Shown piece after piece: positions 9,071 to 21,100 of a stretch of DNA of 64,000 nt. The notes beneath the pieces were generated by a model, which made no database searches, was not told the origin of the DNA, and worked only from the letters and a program-made list of their open reading frames with translations. A program made the position numbers and the translations under genes. This stretch comes from Asterias rubens (lineage: Eukaryota). The stretch lies in assembly GCF_902459465.1 (NCBI RefSeq), contig NC_047072.1:6014001-6078000 (forward strand). Direction: 5' to 3'. How positions within the stretch are numbered: position 1 is the stretch's first letter; the number at the start of each line of letters is the position of its first letter.

Positions 9071-9619
9071 TTTAGGATGCGGGAATACTGTTTCTTAGAC
9101 TTTTAATTTAATTATTTCCTTAAAGCTTGTAAACAAAGCCTCTTATAAAAGCTCTTTCTTAACCTCTCTGAGTGGTTTACACACGTTTTGATACTCCTAT
9201 GCACATTCTGGCTGGCACCCCTAGTGCAGTGACTTGCTTAGTCACAAGTTTCTGCTTAAATTGGAATTATGAGTTATTTACCCACACCTGTGACGTCATG
9301 CTATTGTTAAAATCATAATGGCGCGCAGCTTGGGCTTTATCCTGTACATAAACCACAAGGGAAAATGACTGGGAAAATTTCAAATGATTTGGGGCGGAAC
9401 AAATAAAAATTTACTGGAGCGGGATTTGAACCAACAACCTTCAGATTGTGCTTCAATCCGGTGGTCGTTGGTTGAAATCCTGCTTTATTGGTTGTTTTGT
9501 TGTTTTTCAACTTTCCCTCAAATCAATTCTTGAATTTCTCAGGCTATAGGTGCAGTTGCTGTGTAAAAAATGGTTCATGCAAGATTTTGTACAGCAACCT
9601 GTGCATTATGAGCAAACCC

Positions 9620-10890: not shown

Positions 10891-12955
10891 ATGAAAATGG
10901 CATACCAGCCATCGCAAGTATTCGCCTCGTTCACTCCACAGACAGAAGAAACCAAACATTTGCCGAGTAACGTTCAGAAAGGAAACAAGCTTGTCCGGGA
11001 AGTGCAAGTTTCCTCGACGGGCGAGTCGTTTCTGGCCCCGGACAGGGCGACTGTTCAGGTGGTTGTCACGAGCAGTAAAGACTCGATTGGTGATGTCAAG
11101 TCCAGCACAACCAGACGACTGGATTACATCATACAAACACTGCACACACACAATGTTAAGGTAGTTGTCCACCTTTTGTATTTGTTGTATTTTATTTTCT
11201 GCCAAACTAAAATAAAGTCGACCCAGACCCAGTCGGACCCCCGCGGTACGAAAGCCTCACTATCATTTTTTACAGCAAAGACAAGGTCTAAAATGTTTGC
11301 CACACGACAGGACCCATTTTTTCGCAGACAAGTTTCTGTATCCTGCCAGTGCCACCACTTTATAATTCGTTATGAAATGAGATTCCTTTTTGTTTGTAAT
11401 TGAATGAAAAAGTGGTGGCAGGGTACTTTCTTTCTGTACTACAACTACAGAAAGAAGGTCTACCATCAAAATCAAATCAAGATCGTCAGACATTAAGCTG
11501 GGCGGAGTGAGGGTGTGCAAATTTCAATGGTAATGGTTGCTTTATCTATCCACTCCGTTGCAATGTGGCCGGCAAAAGTCGTCATGCACTGTACAACAAC
11601 AGCCTTTTTAAAATTAATTTGCAAGCCCCTATGACGTAATTTATCAAACTACACACATGTAATGTAATTCTCATATTGAGAAGCAGTCAATCATAATCTT
11701 GTTTACTCCAAGTTCATTTTCTGGTCCAAAATTACTAAACTTCATTTTAAAACATGTTTAAACCACAACGCAAATTACCACTTAGTGACGTCACTTTGAC
11801 AGCTCAGTTAAAAAAAAGTGGCTTAAAAATTTCCAATTACATCACCACTGTCATGAATGTAGCTCTCAATCAACTTGTTTCAATAATTTTCAGCATTTTT
11901 TGTGTGTTAATTTCCAGGAAGGTGATGTGACAATCAGTAAATTCATCCAGCGCGTCGACAGTCTGTACACTATGGAGGCAGAAGTTACCATTATCTTCGT
12001 TGACTTCACCAAGTGCCAGTCGGTTTGTAACTTCCTTGTGGAGAAACTTGATGAGACGGTCAAGCTGCATCCTCCTCACTTCTACCATTGCACAAAGAGT
12101 TTAGAAGGCCTAAGGTAAGTCCCTACCTCTACCCCCTCCCAACCCCACCCCCTCCCAACCCACCCCATCAGGCAATGAGCCATTTGCAGGTTGGATTTAA
12201 ATGATGTCTAGTATAATTTAGACTTGTTGACAAGTCGTGAGTGGTTTGTCACGGTGATAGTCGAGTCATGGTGGTGGCACAAAACATGTTTGAAACATCA
12301 GTGTTGGAAAAGAATGGCAACACAGTAGGAGGGTTAACAAGATACATTTTTTGACAATTTGGATAGCTAGCTACATGTTCACATGTTCAGTCAGCTCTCT
12401 TTATGACAAAGTCACTGGGACTGGCCAAATAACCTCTTTATAAAATAACAGATGAAAAATAAGAAATGTTTCATGCTCCTTCGCTTCGCTCATCCGCATG
12501 AAAAACAGTTTCATTCTAAGAACAGCCTCAATGATTACACTATACGACAAAATGATTCAATTTCTGAATTATTTTAATGACAACTTTGGATAAGGGCCAG
12601 GATTCAGATGCCGATTACCCTGGAGTAATTTATAACAATAATATTATTTCTTTAAAAACATTCGGATTAAATTATAAGCAAAATACTGTTTTGACAACTC
12701 ATTAAATATGAAACTAATAATCCATAATTTTTCATGATACATTTCAATTGAAAATCTATTTGAAAAGAAATTACATAATTCAATATCACCAATAATTCCA
12801 CCGAGGAATTTTAGCCCTTACGGCTCTTCGGATTATCTGTCCGGCCAAAAAACTCATTAATAACAAAGAATTCACCTCTCTCAAGTTCCAATCATGAAAC
12901 TTTGGCCCTTGAGGCTCTACTGAACTTTGTCCTCAGTCCATTTCTCTTCACCGAA

Positions 12956-12995
<40 letters not shown>

Positions 12996-15900
12996 ACCAA
13001 TCAATTCTAACTCCTTTACTTTTCGCACAGAGACCTCGATAAGGCCAAGCGAGTTTCTATATCCCGCTTAATGTACCTGTTTTTGGCTTGTTGGGTTTTC
13101 CACCTACCATGCTGCATGATTAACTCTTCCGATATACCCTTATTGGCCAAATGAGTAGCGCCTCCAGAACGCATGCTATGTAAACCAAAAGACTGCGGAC
13201 GCTCTATGCCAATTTGTTTCATTGCATCTAAAAAGATTTCCCTGCATCTGGTATAACTAAGAGGTTTGTGCTTTACCGGTTTGTAAGATTTTGTGCTCGA
13301 ATGAAATGATAAGGCTGTAAATACATACACATCTTCGCCACATTGTATATCACATTGATGCATATATCTACGTAACATTGTTACTGGACAGTAAGTATTC
13401 TGTGTGCACGACAAAAAAGTAGTGTTGCCATCTCTAAAAATGTCCGTTTTAGAACGGGGAATAAAAATTCTCAACCCGGCTTGATTTTCTAATTCAGTGA
13501 TGTGGCATGCTTTTAGTTGTGCCATCTCATCGTGTCTGAACAGAAGAGAAAACATTAACGTCACATAACAAGCCGTCCTTAATTGTATGAGACTACTTTC
13601 TTGATTAGCGAATTTATCAGCTATAGATCTCACATGATCAATTGTTAAAGGTTCCTTCTGCTCTGGGGGTTTATGCAGTGATTTTCTTTGGCTGATTACA
13701 ATCTGTTTCAGTAGTGGAGAGTCTACTGGGTTTGACTCGATATTCAGGAGAGAATGAAGCCATTTAATTGCAGCGGAAATCGTAATTATTGAACTTTCAG
13801 ATTGCGACAAATTACTCTTATCGATGATAAAAGCAGCAACAACAGTGTCTTGAACTGGGAATCGGAGAGGAATTTTATGAGCAACCAACCAAGCGAAAAA
13901 ATCTCTGCATTTATAAAGATAACTGTTTAGAGTACTCTCTGCTTTGGCTAACAAAATATCCTGAAAAATTTGTTCCTTGAATGCGTCTATACTGTTGGGA
14001 AAGCTTGACCAAAAATCTTGACTGCGAATGACCTATACAGCAATTAAGAGAAAATTAATTAAGAATAGATAATCAACTCATGTAACTTAATCAAATCTCA
14101 GTACAATCAATATATATGGCACATACTGGACTAGTAAACGTATCTGAGCCCAAATAAGAATTCTTGTTATTCCCCAACTCTAAGATGTCTGAACCTTCAA
14201 GAGTTATCATTCCCGTAATCCATGTTCTGTAACAAGACCATAACAAAGGCCAAAAGGGGGAGGAGGGCCACCAGGGGAAAACAAGGGCTCCTCTGCCTTT
14301 ACATAAGTACAAATGTCTTAGAACACTAGGGATCAAAAGTACAGGGGGCACTAACAAACAATTCTCTTTTGACCAATCCTGTGCTAAGGCATCTACGCCG
14401 GCTGTATTTGGATTCCAAAATCTGGAAAAGAAGCGGGACACTTTAGCATTATAATAACTTGCAAAACAGTCAACTGAGAAAGGACCCCATGTATCATTGA
14501 TTATGCTGAAGAATTTGTCTGAAATCATCCAATCATCTAAATCGATCAATCTACTGACAAAGTCTGCTTTGTCATTCATGGTTCTTGGTATCCATTCTAC
14601 TTCTAGACGCACATTGTTATTAATACAAATATTGAAAATATCAATTGCCAAACTATGTAAATCCACCTTCATGCTTCCTACTTCCACTATCTCGGGATCG
14701 GACTCGGTGTGACAGTGGGGGGCCTGTTGCGTAGGGACACTCCCGGGCCCAGTGGCCAGGCATTCTGCAGCTGAAACACACATCATTTGGCATGCCTAAA
14801 ATGTATAATGAGAAAAAATACAAACAGCGAGAAAAACTGGAACTTCATATAAGGAAAACACGAACAATATGGGTAACCGGCAGTGAACGACCTGAAAGAA
14901 CTCACTGGTCACTACCGTAGCTTTATATATCCGAATGCTTTAATGCTTCGGTGAGTTTACATCAATTCTAGGCGTGGCTCCCTTGAACCATAACCAACAC
15001 TTTGCATTGAACGGGGGGCACACTCCCATCATTGATGCTATCCCAACGAATGAAACTAAATTTTCATGCTCCTTCGCTTCGCTCATCCGCATGAAAAACA
15101 GTTTCATTCTAAGAACAGCCTCAATGATTACACTATACGACAAAATGATTCAATTTCTGAATTATTTTAATGACAACTTTGGATAAGGGCCAGGATTCAG
15201 ATGCCCTTTGAAACAACCAAAGACAAAAGGGGGAATTTAACGTTTTACCTCGAAAAAGACTACGGTCACCAAAATTCTTGAAAACCACCCCATCTTGCTG
15301 TCGTCTATCCGAAGTCTTTTGTTTCTTTCTTCCTTCCAATTCTTTGAGAGCAGCGTCCTCAGCTATCTGCACCTTCTTCTGATCTTCGGAAGACTGGTCT
15401 CTCTTGCCGCCCTTCTCTAACTGTTGAATGGTGATCCAACCTGCTCTACTGCTATCAGCGATCTTGATCTTTTGCTTTCTATCCGCTAAAAGGTCCTCAG
15501 CCTCGTGAATAGCTTCGACGACCTTGTCTGTATCACCCTTCTGCAAAAAGGCGACTTTTATTTTATCTAGAATAATCTCTAGCTGTCCACAAAACAGCAG
15601 TTGGGCAGAATTACCGGGCTTGGTCAACTCCTTCGCTTCCAATTTTATTTTGAGTTCCTTCACCGCTGTTTCATCTGTGATAGTGGAGTTAGCCAACTTG
15701 TCGAATTTCTTGTCGAAATAACTCTGAAACTTTTCAAACAAAAGCTCAGTGCTTAAAGCGGAACCGTGCTCCTCTGCATTAGCCATAACACTATCAGAAC
15801 TTCATATAAGGAAAACACGAACAATATGGGTAACCGGCAGTGAACGACCTGAAAGAACTCACTGGTCACTACCGTAGCTTTATATATCCGAATGCTTTAA

Positions 15901-16674
15901 TGCTTCGGTGAGTTTACATCAATTCTAGGCGTGGCTCCCTTGAACCATAACCAACACTTTGCATTGAACGGGGGGCACACTCCCATCATTGATGCTATCC
16001 CAACGAATGAAACTAAATTTGTTATGAGAGGACAGCAAAACAAAGAATGTACTCTTCAAAATGTACATGTACTCTTTATATTGGAAGCAGAAACTACAAA
16101 ACCAACAGTGCTGCATGCCCGGAATTACATGGAGGCCATCGCCTCAATTGCCCCCGTGCTGGTCTTGGTGCCCCTTCAGAACTTTCCCTCTACTCTAGAC
16201 TCTAATGGAAGTGTTAGTGCCCATTGCAAAATGAAGTTGACCTTGCCCTCTCAAAGATGAAATTCCAGACCTAATGCTGTTTTCATGGAGACTTGACTTG
16301 GTGTAGATATTTTGCAGGGTAACGACCTTCAACATTTTGTACAATGTAGCTGGTGAAAAAACTATTACTTTAAAAAAGGGATATATTTTGTATTTCTGTT
16401 CAGGAGGCTGGCATGTCTGAATGCAGTGCAAAATGCTCGACAGAAAGCCCTGGACGTCGCACGGTTGCTCCGTCAGGGGCTTGGGAGACCACTGGCCATA
16501 CGAGAGGAGGAGACCACAGAGATTGAGGGGTCACCGCGAGGTTCAGCCAACGGGAACGACGGACCGCTAACGTTCCAGCAACGCATCGCTAACGCCACGG
16601 TGACAGTGACCGTTAAGGTTTTTGCGCAGTTTGAACTTGTGTCCAGAGAGAAAGGCAGGCAGACAAAGACATGA
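10891..16674 (+). CDS. IRAK1BP1: IRAK1-binding protein 1 / SIMPL (~245 aa; exons 10891-11160, 11918-12114, 16404-16674; start may be 10897)
   Basis: Spliced protein has REVQVSSTG...PDRA...SSK...RRLDYIIQTL, AEVTIIFVDFTKCQSVCNFLVEKLD, RLACLNAVQNARQKA...LGRPLAIREEET and TFQQRIANAT, matching recalled IRAK1BP1/SIMPL-domain motifs. GT-AG introns with compatible phases 0 and 2. Confidence 0.9.
12469..12612 (-). repeat. Terminal repeat B2 of the YR retrotransposon
   Basis: Identical to 15062-15205. Confidence 0.95.
13016..14032 (-). CDS. Tyrosine recombinase (lambda-integrase family) ORF of the retrotransposon, 338 codons, no upstream ATG
   Basis: Catalytic set R (LLFRHDE), K (RSKTD), HxxR (HSMRSGGAT), H/W (HGRW), Y (RYI). 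The frame is open upstream of the track start up to an acceptor-like ttttctcttaattgctgtatag at 14033. Confidence 0.9.
   Translation of the reverse strand, partial: VIRSQDFWSSFPNSIDAFKEQIFQDILLAKAESTLNSYLYKCRDFFAWLVAHKIPLRFPVQDTVVAAFIIDKSNLSQSESSIITISAAIKWLHSLLNIESNPVDSPLLKQIVISQRKSLHKPPEQKEPLTIDHVRSIADKFANQESSLIQLRTACYVTLMFSLLFRHDEMAQLKACHITELENQAGLRIFIPRSKTDIFRDGNTTFLSCTQNTYCPVTMLRRYMHQCDIQCGEDVYVFTALSFHSSTKSYKPVKHKPLSYTRCREIFLDAMKQIGIERPQSFGLHSMRSGGATHLANKGISEELIMQHGRWKTQQAKNRYIKRDIETRLALSRSLCEK
14091..14690 (-). CDS. Remnant of pol: RNase H C-terminus plus DIRS-type DAM-methyltransferase-like domain (RT and RNase H N-terminus deleted)
   Basis: IVEVGSMK..LHSLAIDIF...EWIPRTMNDKADFVSR (RNase H end); WGPFSVDCFAS...AGVDALAQDW...LVPPV...PWWPSSPFWP (MT-like). 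No YxDD RT motif anywhere in the element. Confidence 0.8.
   Translation of the reverse strand: MVEVGSMKVDLHSLAIDIFNICINNNVRLEVEWIPRTMNDKADFVSRLIDLDDWMISDKFFSIINDTWGPFSVDCFASYYNAKVSRFFSRFWNPNTAGVDALAQDWSKENCLLVPPVLLIPSVLRHLYLCKGRGALVFPWWPSSPFWPLLWSCYRTWITGMITLEGSDILELGNNKNSYLGSDTFTSPVCAIYIDCTEI
14653..15786 (-). CDS. Spliced gag-like ORF with CCHC zinc knuckle (exons 15786-15249, 14795-14653; 453-nt intron)
   Basis: Donor CGAG|GTAAAA at 15248 and acceptor tgtattttttctcattatacattttag|GC at 14796 join in frame to give FRGMPNDVCFSCRMPGHWARECPY (Cx2Cx4Hx4C). Confidence 0.8.
14840..15205 (-). repeat. Internal B1-A2 junction (circle-junction-like copy of both termini)
   Basis: 14840-15063 equals 15797-16020, and 15062-15205 equals 12469-12612. 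Confidence 0.95.
15797..16020 (-). repeat. Terminal repeat A1, containing a putative TATA promoter
   Basis: Identical to A2. Minus-strand GGATATATAAAGC near 15878-15888 with an Inr-like CCAGT ~25 nt downstream; the gag ATG is at 15786. Confidence 0.85.
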
Positions 16675-18135: not shown

Positions 18136-21100
18136 TTAGTCAAAGTAATCCTCAATATCGATTCCCGGATCTAGAAGATCTTCTCCATAAATGCTAAGAT
18201 CCATCGCGTTCAAAATAAGGTTCTCAAATGTTTCCTCCAAGTCCGTCTCTCCGATCAGCACAGCGCCTTGCATCCTCCCATCCTTCATCACCACCTTAAT
18301 GTACTCCTTCCCCTTCGTCATGCGCAACAGATACTCAAAGTTCGACCCCAAACCCTGAGCGTTGTACTTTCCCAGGAGCACCACTTTATACCCGAAGAAT
18401 TTTGTCACATGAGCGAACAACTCAAAGCAGAAATCCTGTGGGATCGTCTCACGAGTGGTATCGGCGACCATACACTTCCCGGCATAAGCTCCCATTTGTC
18501 GCGCCTGGGACCACAACCGCATCTGAATCCAATGGGGAGATGGTTCCCACGATGCACTGCACACGTCCCCCGCTGCATAAACATTGGGAATGTTAGTCCG
18601 CATGTGATTGTTAACTTTTAAACCGCCGTCTTTGGCGATCTCAAAATCGGCAGCGAAGAGAGGTATCTTGGTGTTTGGGATGACTCCGGTTGCGCTGATT
18701 ACAAAGTCACATCCATAGAGTTTGCCGTTTGTGAGAGCAACATACACAGGCCAGTTGGGGGAATCACCAGTACGTCCTGTATTTGTCGAGGGAAATACAT
18801 CTGGTGTTCGTCCAGATGAGGACATTTCCTCTGTTGTAAGGACGCATTCAACCTAATTATTAGAGAGAAAAAATTGCGAAATTCTAATTTAAAAACTGCA
18901 TAATGTATATGAATTCCCAACCACTACAAATGTGTTTTAAGGCTTTGATAACTTCTTGATGAAAAATTCGCTCTTTTGAATAGAGGGGCTTATTCCCTAA
19001 GATTTGAGCTACAATGTACACAAAGAGCTTGTTATGAAATGAACATGGTTAGACAGATGCTTTAAAAGTAGAATATGTGTCCCTTTTTAAGACTAAACAG
19101 ATCTCACAGTTTCTTCAGAATGGACTGAAAAACTTTTTTTCATTTTACCCACATCATTATTTCTACTGTCTGAACTTTGAGTCACTGGGCAAAGGTGCTT
19201 TAACAAGTATTCTACAGAAAAAGAAAAAAAATGAACGAACAGCTTCTTGATTATTTTGTTTTGCATTTTTTTAATAAAAAACAGACCTACTAATTTTTTA
19301 ACAGATGTCAATTTGCATCAGGGATAAAGTATATTCATTTTGGTGTTACACTTAGAAGTACACACCGATGTGTGTACTGTATACATTACTCAGTACTTTC
19401 CAGATTTCTGTTGAAAAACTCACAATTTAGGCATACTACTCAAGTTGGATTCGAACTCACAACCTTTGCAATTCTAGAGCAGCGTCATACCATCTAGACC
19501 ACCGAGATTGCCCGGTAGCGTTAGAGGCAGTTTTTGTAAACAGAGTATTGAAAGCATTTATTGGGACAATAATGAAGTTCATGAGTTTTCTTTAGTTCAA
19601 AATTTAACTTTAAATGTGGCCACTTGTCTGAAACACGTCAAACTGGGGAATCGGTGTTGTAGTTTTATTGACAACCAATTTGAGTCACTTTCTTAATCTT
19701 TATTCTTTTTGTGGAGTCTATTTACCTCGCAGGTGTACTCCACATGAACGTGATGTGAACCCTGTACCTTTCCCTCCATCCTCAGTCCAACGCTCCAATC
19801 AGGACCAAGAGCACCCCCTTGTGCCTTGGCGTCTCCCTTTACAGACTTGGTGACTGAAAGGAAAAGAAGCAGAAAGATTATCAATTTTATTATCGGTTTC
19901 AAATGACGCTATCAGTCGATGACCACAGTTTCTTTACTAAATGCAACAAATGTAAAGAGAGTGTCATGGCGTGCCATTGCCGAGGGGTCTACATGTATTA
20001 TCGGTTTCAAATGACGCTATCAGTCGATGACAACAGTTTCTTTACTAAATGCAACAAATGTAAAGAGAGTGTCATGGCGTGCCATTGCCAAGGGGTCTAC
20101 ATGTAGTTCACCAGACCCAAGCTCTGGGGTCGATTTCACAAAGAGTTAGGACTAGTCCTAACTTGGGACTAGTCCTAGGAGATACAAAAGACGTATGGCT
20201 AGTCCCAAGTTAGGTAGAGTAACTCGTCCTAACATGAGATAAGACTAGTCTTAACTCTTCGTGAAATCCACTACTGGCGTTGTTTAGCAGGAAAGTGTGG
20301 GTTCGATGACCGGCCATGACACTTGTGCCCTTGTGCAAGGCCCTTAATTCATAATTACTTCATAAAAAGTTGGGAAGGTAGTGCATTCTGCTCTACCAGC
20401 CAGTCTCATAGTGGCTGATGCCCATGCCTACATCCTTCCGACTGTGAAAGTGGGGAGGAGGGCGGAGTAGCCCTACTGCAGCCCAAGAAGTAGGTGGCAC
20501 TGAGCCCTGGTGGCAGTTGATTAGGGTTGATAGCCCAAATTGGTTAAGTGTAGCCCTCACCTTGAAGTGGCCATTCGGCCTTGTGATGTTAGCCAATCTC
20601 ATCAAAAATACTGTTTAACATGTTTAATTGCATGCTTCAAACTTCTCAACAGAAAACATATTTTGCTGCTCTTCTATTGGATTAACATGCAGCACCTGGC
20701 CAAGTAAAACTATGAGCTGTGCCCCGCATTGGCTACGGCTAGATCGCTGAAAAGCCTTGTTCTTCCCTGTTACTTTGCGGCCAATGGTGATAGCCACGAA
20801 CAAACTACAGTACATTGTAAATGCAAGAGCTGATATCAGTCGTTGCAACCCAAATTAAGGATAAGGTGTTCACGTGTGTGCTGGAAATTGTGCATTGTTT
20901 TTCAATTCTTTCTCTTGACTCACACAACAAACTTTAAAGAGCACTTTTCACTTTCAGAAGTTGATTACTTCATGGTTGGTAAAACATTAACACTGTCCGA
21001 GACTATTTTGTTGGCTGTCCAAACTCTGAATAATACTAGAAACAATTCTTTTTCTCCCTCAAGGAAATCACTAACATCCCTGTATGCTTCATTTTTGAAA

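Follow-up and report, generated by a model that had tools for sequence, protein, structure and literature searches.

How can a retrotransposon carry, in the middle of its gag gene, the internal repeat copies from which its ends would be rebuilt, and still encode a Gag protein with a CCHC knuckle? This question is raised by a 3,552-nt split-direct-repeat (SDR) element on the minus strand (16020-12469) of a 64,000-nt stretch of Asterias rubens DNA (NC_047072.1, positions 6,014,001 to 6,078,000), here called the window. All window features described below lie on the minus strand. Read from its 5' end, the element consists of the terminal repeat A1, gag exon 1, a candidate splice donor (GAG|GTAAAA), the internal repeats B1 and A2, a pyrimidine tract followed by TAG|, a CCHC knuckle, a remnant of pol, a tyrosine recombinase (YR) gene and the terminal repeat B2. 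A1 and A2 (224 nt) are 100% identical to each other, as are B1 and B2 (144 nt), and B1 abuts A2. Judged by its domain content and repeat type, the family is a PAT-like tyrosine-recombinase retrotransposon of echinoderms within the DIRS order, and the closest named relatives of its Pol are unannotated echinoderm proteins. A sequence-only reading of the window had proposed that a spliceosomal intron of gag encloses the whole B1-A2 block, and that splicing separates an RNA that makes Gag from an RNA that serves as genome.

The gag gene is divided around the B1-A2 block

The unspliced gag open reading frame (ORF; 15786-15133) encodes 217 amino acids (aa). It begins at an ATG (15786) lying 10 nt beyond the end of A1 (15797-16020), terminates inside B1 (stop at 15135-15133) and contains no knuckle, as the sequence-only reading had described. 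Its first part, gag exon 1 (15249-15786; 179 codons plus one base, ending in ...CTTTTTCGAG), shows homology to the N-terminal domain found in the Gag of CCHC proteins from Patiria miniata. It is followed by the candidate spliceosomal intron 1 (14796-15248), which is in phase 1 and is delimited by a GT at 15248-15247 and an AG at 14797-14796, the latter preceded by a long pyrimidine tract. These 453 nt enclose the entire B1-A2 block (15205-14840), composed of B1 (15062-15205) and A2 (14840-15063), so the proposed bracketing of the block by the two sites stands. Joining 15249 to 14795 keeps the reading frame and yields ...DRSLFRG|MPNDVCFSCRMPGHWAREC, in which SLFRG meets MPNDVCFSC. The exon behind the acceptor starts with GC ATG CCA at 14795 and carries the CCHC knuckle at 14778-14737; the in-frame fusion of gag to this knuckle, also part of the original proposal, is reproduced.

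The sequence-only reading had further placed the end of gag at 14653, and this part did not hold. Alignment to the full-length contigs L002 and L003 (blastn) shows that 1,596 nt are missing from the window copy; the breakpoint is 14691/14690, and the loss takes in the reverse transcriptase (RT) and most of the RNase H (RH). The deletion is in frame for pol, alters the gag tail and leaves intron 1 untouched. Gag exon 2 of the window copy (14653-14795) consequently continues into a foreign tail after 14691 and ends at 14653 in a premature stop created by the deletion. In the full-length copies, which have the same intron, the intact spliced Gag comprises 277 aa rather than 226.

Position and phase of the junction recur in diverged lineages

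The closest named relatives of Gag come from P. miniata, where NCBI annotates them as CCHC-domain proteins. For comparison we used four diverged loci of this species (L001, L006, L007 and L008), whose Gag is 44-61% identical to that of the window family. All four follow the order A1, exon 1, GT, B1-A2, AG, knuckle exon and, later, B2; a further locus, L009, keeps the same order as far as A2, where its contig ends. At the junction, the P. miniata proteins in NCBI read LFRG|MPND.., LFRG|LPND.., LFRG|MSSF.. and LFRG|LSSY.., and the NCBI models P0002, P0004, P0007 and P0009 use the same phase-1 junction. In L001, L007 and L008, a single GT-AG solution reproduces the NCBI protein, each time within the same Gly codon and in phase 1; L006 has a GT and an AG at equivalent positions. 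The donor is also present in three further contigs. On this comparison, the recurrence of GT, AG and phase in four diverged loci is more than chance would produce. Conservation of splice-site position and phase around the internal repeats, by which the sequence-only reading proposed to judge its intron, is found in full-length and diverged members of the family.

Around the donor, the last 10 exon bases and the GT (CTTTTTCGAG|GT; window 15258-15247) are invariant in eight lineages, compared to 3 of the 34 bases upstream. The invariance extends to all synonymous positions and exceeds the requirements of a 5' splice site; the motif is similar to the left arm of the palindrome at the B|A junction described below. 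The donor hexamers of the eight lineages are GTAAAA, GTAACA, GTATAA, GTATTG, GTACAC, GTATAT, GTAACC and GTCAAA, and the acceptors combine long pyrimidine tracts with YAG|GC. An alternative acceptor shifted by 1 nt, which would bring exon 1 into the pol frame, was considered and rejected, as the sequence at this position is TAG|GC.

The interiors of the introns cannot be aligned among five lineages, except for a block across the B|A junction. Intron 1 measures 453 nt in the window and 427 (L001), 477, 435 and 8,528 nt (L007) in the P. miniata loci; the NCBI model of L007 splices across the 8.5 kb. At L007 7569-15557, a BEL/Pao long terminal repeat (LTR) retrotransposon with 100% identical LTRs of 843 nt is nested in the gag intron just after the donor. 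A scan of Joint Genome Institute (JGI) metagenomes added two short loci, L010 and the frameshifted L011. In L010 (976-1200), gag exon 1, the donor and B are followed by a flank that is not A, a form that may represent a solo-like B1/B2 recombinant.

The knuckle exon is conserved in the gag frame

The CCHC knuckle CFSCRMPGHWAREC is joined to Gag only once the intron is removed, and it is kept in five lineages. When the knuckle region is translated in the gag frame, amino-acid identity averages 0.51; the two remaining frames give 0.33 and 0.30, and variation is highest at third codon positions. By this pattern of substitution, the knuckle is under coding selection in the gag frame. L006 and L008 lack an ATG in this frame anywhere from the preceding stop to the knuckle, and in these loci the knuckle would be reachable only by splicing.

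Among 25 close relatives obtained by plain ORF calling, none contains the CCHC motif, and in 16 of them the similarity extends through LFRG and gives way to unrelated sequence. An exhaustive profile search gave, among its hits at E<=1e-30, only spliced NCBI models that pass profile position ~186, save for the N-terminally truncated P0033, which extends to position 220. In this search, dozens of distant relatives (21-28% identical) match the profile in a single stretch through FRG...CCHC, and one of them, L013, has an uninterrupted gag with the RT ORF directly after it. Because these distant relatives have a one-piece Gag, the interruption by the intron is derived in the lineage described here.

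The pol frame and a second intron missing from one genomic copy

In all five loci, pol occupies the +1 frame with respect to gag exon 2. In four of the five, this frame is open beginning at the acceptor or slightly upstream, and it overlaps gag by ~290-430 nt (window 14795-14500; L003 1326-1619). A pol-frame ATG at an equivalent place occurs in only two loci.

NCBI's YR models for L006 and L008 presuppose a second intron, which removes RT, RH and a Dam-like methyltransferase (MT) and joins a pol-frame leader to the YR ORF. Its donor follows KFxD(V/I)x(E/Q/K) and reads |GTA. Its acceptor consists of a pyrimidine tract and (T/C)AG| right before the YR ORF, which begins (V/I)(I/V)..FW. The sites are located at 1661/3685 in L003, 9309/11323 in L006 and 8261/10281 in L008. 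The window copy keeps the acceptor (AG at 14034-14033, with the exon starting at 14032, where the YR ORF opens); the donor was lost in the deletion.

A genomic copy corresponding to the product of this second intron is found in P. miniata. L001, a 3.3-kb copy without RT, RH and MT, contains in its DNA the exact exon-exon junction KFSDVIE|VISGQQFW (9284-9328). Because the deletion is exact at both predicted splice sites, L001 is best read as a retro-copy of an RNA from which intron 2 had been spliced. In L001, intron 1 is still present together with B1-A2, and A1 matches A2 at 99.6% identity. The junction indicates, indirectly, that host splicing acts on RNA of the family; the copy further suggests that pol is dispensable for replication in trans, as long as the RNA holds on to B1-A2.

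Signals in the repeats and at the B|A junction

An AATAAA or ATTAAA is present at positions 31-41 of B in all five lineages (ATTAAA at 15171-15166 in the B1 of the window). In four lineages the donor lies 61-105 nt upstream of this poly(A) signal in B1, and the junction block follows ~60 nt farther downstream. In A, the motif TTCAGG is invariant (14896-14891 in A2), and the TATA sequence TATATAAA stands ~33 nt upstream of it in the window (14929-14922 in A2) and in L007. The internal B1 and A2 thus place a pair of terminator and promoter-like sequences inside the gag intron. A transcript running from an A-internal start to the poly(A) signal of B2 would contain neither the bulk of A1 nor the end of B2, and B1-A2 holds exactly these missing parts. 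In the published model of SDR replication, annealing between repeats is required, and the internal B1A2 supplies the missing ends (PMC6681497).

A stretch of approximately 55 nt spanning the B|A junction hardly varies between species (window 15104-15051; L001 8655-8715; L006 8672-8732; L007 15668-15728; L008 7663-7723). This block forms an imperfect palindrome, AAACTG-TTTTTCATGC ... GCATGAAAA-TTTAGTTT, with the arms TTTTCATGC...GCATGAAAA. The outer AAACTG/TAGTTT stem forms only across the B|A joint, so that the hairpin into which the block folds spans the junction. From its sequence, the block may be a recombinase site or a priming structure.

A proposed retrovirus-like splicing programme and its alternatives

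Taken together with the conserved junction and reading frame, intron 1 is probably real and functional, and each step that is added to this statement carries a lower probability. We postulate that B1-A2 is a stored copy of the B2|A1 circle junction, together with the repeat parts that would be absent from a terminally incomplete transcript. Transcription would start late in A1, behind the TATA sequence and at TTCAGG, and would end early in B2, at the AATAAA/ATTAAA signal. Intron 1 would split the N-terminal domain of Gag from its CCHC knuckle. The intron-retaining RNA, with its B1-A2, would be the replication template and genome. The spliced RNA would provide full Gag and entry into the overlapping +1 pol frame, having lost the template, and its termini would not be regenerable. 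Splicing of intron 2 would drop RT, RH and MT and give a recombinase message, like a retroviral subgenomic mRNA. In addition, the weak but invariant donor may silence the nearby poly(A) signal of B1 through the U1 small nuclear ribonucleoprotein (snRNP). HIV-1 likewise uses its major splice donor to silence a poly(A) site, and in foamy viruses the suppression of a nearby poly(A) site by a splice donor acts through U1 (PMC3694450).

As a whole, this would amount to a retrovirus-like splicing programme, in which the template for the circle junction and the termini and the duplicated terminator/promoter pair are quarantined in a gag intron, replication is confined to unspliced RNA, complete Gag comes solely from spliced RNA, the weak donor fixes the proportion of the two RNAs and silences the poly(A) signal, and intron 2 yields the recombinase mRNA. 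To the complete programme we assign an even chance. Of the interpretation given in the sequence-only reading, the anatomy stands and is extended by the conserved junction, while for the two RNA fates the support is indirect and comes from the processed copy L001.

Several points weigh against this interpretation. The donors are weak: none of the eight has a G at +5, and one is GTCAAA. Searches of protein collections with exon 1 and with the Gag profile returned no spliced Gag from transcript assemblies, either for the window family or for P. miniata. Each of the four P. miniata Gag models is known from a single genome contig, and the NCBI gene models may be purely computational. Pol is in the +1 frame relative to gag exon 2, and the processed copy is a single case. 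That no close relative has an uninterrupted gag, and hence the continuous gag-knuckle ORF that the sequence-only reading had named as evidence against itself, is the outcome of a protein search rather than of a genome census. Finally, the canonical poly(A) signal in B1 and the promoter-like region of A2 would permit unspliced, separately transcribed units.

Because of these signals, a model of two transcription units without splicing is a real rival. A1 would drive a Gag N-terminal mRNA that ends in B1, A2 would drive an mRNA for the knuckle, Pol and YR, read-through RNA would be the genome, and GT and AG would be incidental. The poly(A) signal is present in B1 of all five lineages, as this model expects, and A2 shares the TATA/TTCAGG region of A1. 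A start ATG for the knuckle ORF in three lineages, a pol-frame ATG a few codons on in two, and the lack of a spliced product in the protein databases searched point the same way, and B1A2 is located between coding regions in nematode Pat1 and kangaroo as well (PMC4157794). However, the knuckle frame is selected in L006 and L008 although they have no AUG, and the junction codon, phase, GT, AG and pyrimidine tract were kept while the intron interior diverged. Distant relatives, moreover, encode both halves of Gag as one protein, and RNA of the family is evidently spliced at another conserved site, that of intron 2. Since two units are compatible with splicing, the model competes with a spliced gag only in its exclusive form, which we consider unlikely.

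A translational route to the knuckle, by reinitiation, non-AUG initiation or ribosomal bypass, would leave the conserved CTTTTTCGAGGT with some other function in cis. It would accommodate the 10 conserved exon bases, which exceed the needs of a 5' splice site, and the resemblance of the motif to the left arm of the junction palindrome (TGTTTTTCATG). Ribosomes would nevertheless meet many stops in all frames of the intron, the length of which is indivisible by 3 in some cases (427 nt in L001), and in L007 they would have to pass 8.5 kb with a nested Pao element. We know of no precedent for a bypass of >400 nt, and regard this route as very improbable. The internal deletion of the window copy, and the annotation of the P. 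miniata units by NCBI as ordinary protein-coding loci, could also indicate a private rearrangement of a damaged copy or domesticated host genes. Full-length copies with RT, MT and YR have the same arrangement, however, and the breakpoint at 14691/14690 lies outside the intron. Each genome holds several diverged copies, each with near-identical A1/A2 and B1/B2 pairs, and many near-identical copies occur in metagenome contigs. This explanation, refuted by the layout shared among full-length and multiple copies, retains hardly any credibility.

The proposed splicing programme has consequences beyond this locus. It would explain why a terminator-promoter pair lies inside a coding region. If it is true, precise removal or relocation of the intron is expected to abolish transposition, and processed copies are expected without intron 2 and never without intron 1. 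In practical terms, gene annotators already list these gag units as host CCHC genes.

Element ends, full-length copies and other features of the window

An exact look-up of the 217-aa unspliced Gag retrieved seven metagenome contigs (ENA, SOLA22 labels) that are 99.6-99.9% identical to the window element. In L002 and L003, a 763-aa RT/MT ORF lies between the knuckle and the YR gene, and the full-length Pol (P0172) contains PF00078 and PF05869. The window copy retains a pol-frame remnant (14091-14786, +1 relative to gag exon 2) with the leader, the C-terminal end of RNase H and the Dam-like MT. Its match to PF05869 scores 27.0 bits, just below the cut-off of 28.1, and Pfam found no RT domain in the window copy. 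A splicing origin of the deletion was ruled out, as its breakpoints show no GT/AG. The YR ORF (13016-14032) carries the phage-integrase domain PF00589 (13954-13016; E 3.5e-11). Downstream of it come 37 consecutive A (12958-12994), which belong to the 3' untranslated part, and B2 (12469-12612), with which the element ends.

The window copy and L003 differ in the A repeats by a sole C/T change, which is the same in A1 (15836) and A2 (14879). This is a concerted change of both copies and fits templated repeat regeneration. L002 and L004 run from B2 directly into A1; we rejected these joints as evidence of circles or tandems, because an assembler can path through identical repeats.

The element ends in ...GCATGAAA in the window (16023-16018, 12471-12466), L001, L006, L007 and L008, with an A-rich flank (AA/AAA) before its start, and the internal B|A joint reads GCATGAAAATTTAG. 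No target-site duplication was found at the element ends in these five. The ends suggest a crossover within a short A run. Repeat comparison over the element revealed no long inverted repeats, the 64-kb window contains no second copy, and an Rfam scan across the element gave no match. The window copy is a recent insertion, RT-deleted and non-autonomous.

Two further observations concern the surroundings of the genes. The 3' untranslated part (12950-12830) contains two ~100-nt units with a CCGGACAGA..TCCGAAG.GCC..GGGC motif, which recur in L001 (10537-10751) and L006 (12594-12859) and have no match in Rfam. An ORF at 18136-18825, ~2 kb upstream and on the element's strand, looks by eye like the C-terminal portion of a pyridine-nucleotide-disulfide oxidoreductase and is a putative host exon.

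Comparison with known systems

The element shares with PAT, SpPat1, kangaroo and Toc3 a C-X2-C-X4-H-X4-C Gag knuckle, RT/RH, a Dam-like MT, a YR in the same orientation and the order A1...B1A2...B2. It also resembles PAT-type elements in its near-identical repeat pairs and the lack of an evident target-site duplication. The CCHC motif in Gag is a Pat1-like feature, as opposed to Toc3 and kangaroo, and is present here only after removal of the intron; the Dam-like MT, present here, separates DIRS/PAT from Ngaro/VIPER. The difference from PAT-type elements lies in the position of B1A2 inside gag, within the candidate intron. In the published placements, B1A2 either separates MT from YR, as in nematode Pat1 and kangaroo, or lies 3' of YR, as in echinoderm SpPat1, Toc3, Ngaro and VIPER (PMC4157794, PMC6681497). 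At all loci studied here, by contrast, B1A2 is located between the Gag N-terminal domain and the knuckle, which matches none of them.

The sequence-only reading had supposed that such an arrangement had not been described, and our check of the literature agrees. In the later DIRS/PAT literature (PMC4157794, PMC6681497, PMC3266345, PMC7192593, PMC8969392), the scope of this check as distinct from the original PAT, SpPat1 and kangaroo reports, we found no mention of an intron holding B1A2. Introns are reported in kangaroo-1 transcripts, as relayed by PMC1636488 in citing Duncan 2002. For PAT, Ngaro and VIPER, SDR replication is a paper model in which the internal B1A2 rebuilds the ends; here, that copy is tied to an intron. 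DIRS-1's internal complementary region (ICR) is likewise an internal duplicate of the terminal junction, required once the first strand has been synthesized (PMC7192593). It differs in lying near the 3' end, in being non-intronic and in belonging to elements with inverted terminal repeats.

A division of translated from replicated RNAs by host splicing is known from the LTR elements Ogre, copia, BARE and Arabidopsis Ty1/copia (PMC3735527, PMC5580714). Unlike the intron proposed here, the introns of these elements tune the Gag:Pol ratio or join gag to pol. To our knowledge, no intron in a spliced LTR element holds a repeat copy for the regeneration of ends. With retroviruses, the proposed programme would share an unspliced genomic RNA, spliced RNAs that act as replication-incompetent messages, and a subgenomic mRNA for a downstream gene, here YR. 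Retroviral splicing control involves replication signals in cis that lie downstream of the major splice donor, and silencing of the 5' LTR poly(A) site by U1 snRNP; here, too, a donor near a duplicated poly(A) signal may suppress it, as in foamy viruses (PMC3694450). In contrast, retroviruses make Gag from unspliced RNA, whereas complete Gag would need splicing here, and the intronic cis element would be a template for termini rather than a packaging signal. If the proposal is true, the DIRS order, too, acquired a splicing-based split between messenger and genomic RNA, beside retroviruses and LTR elements.

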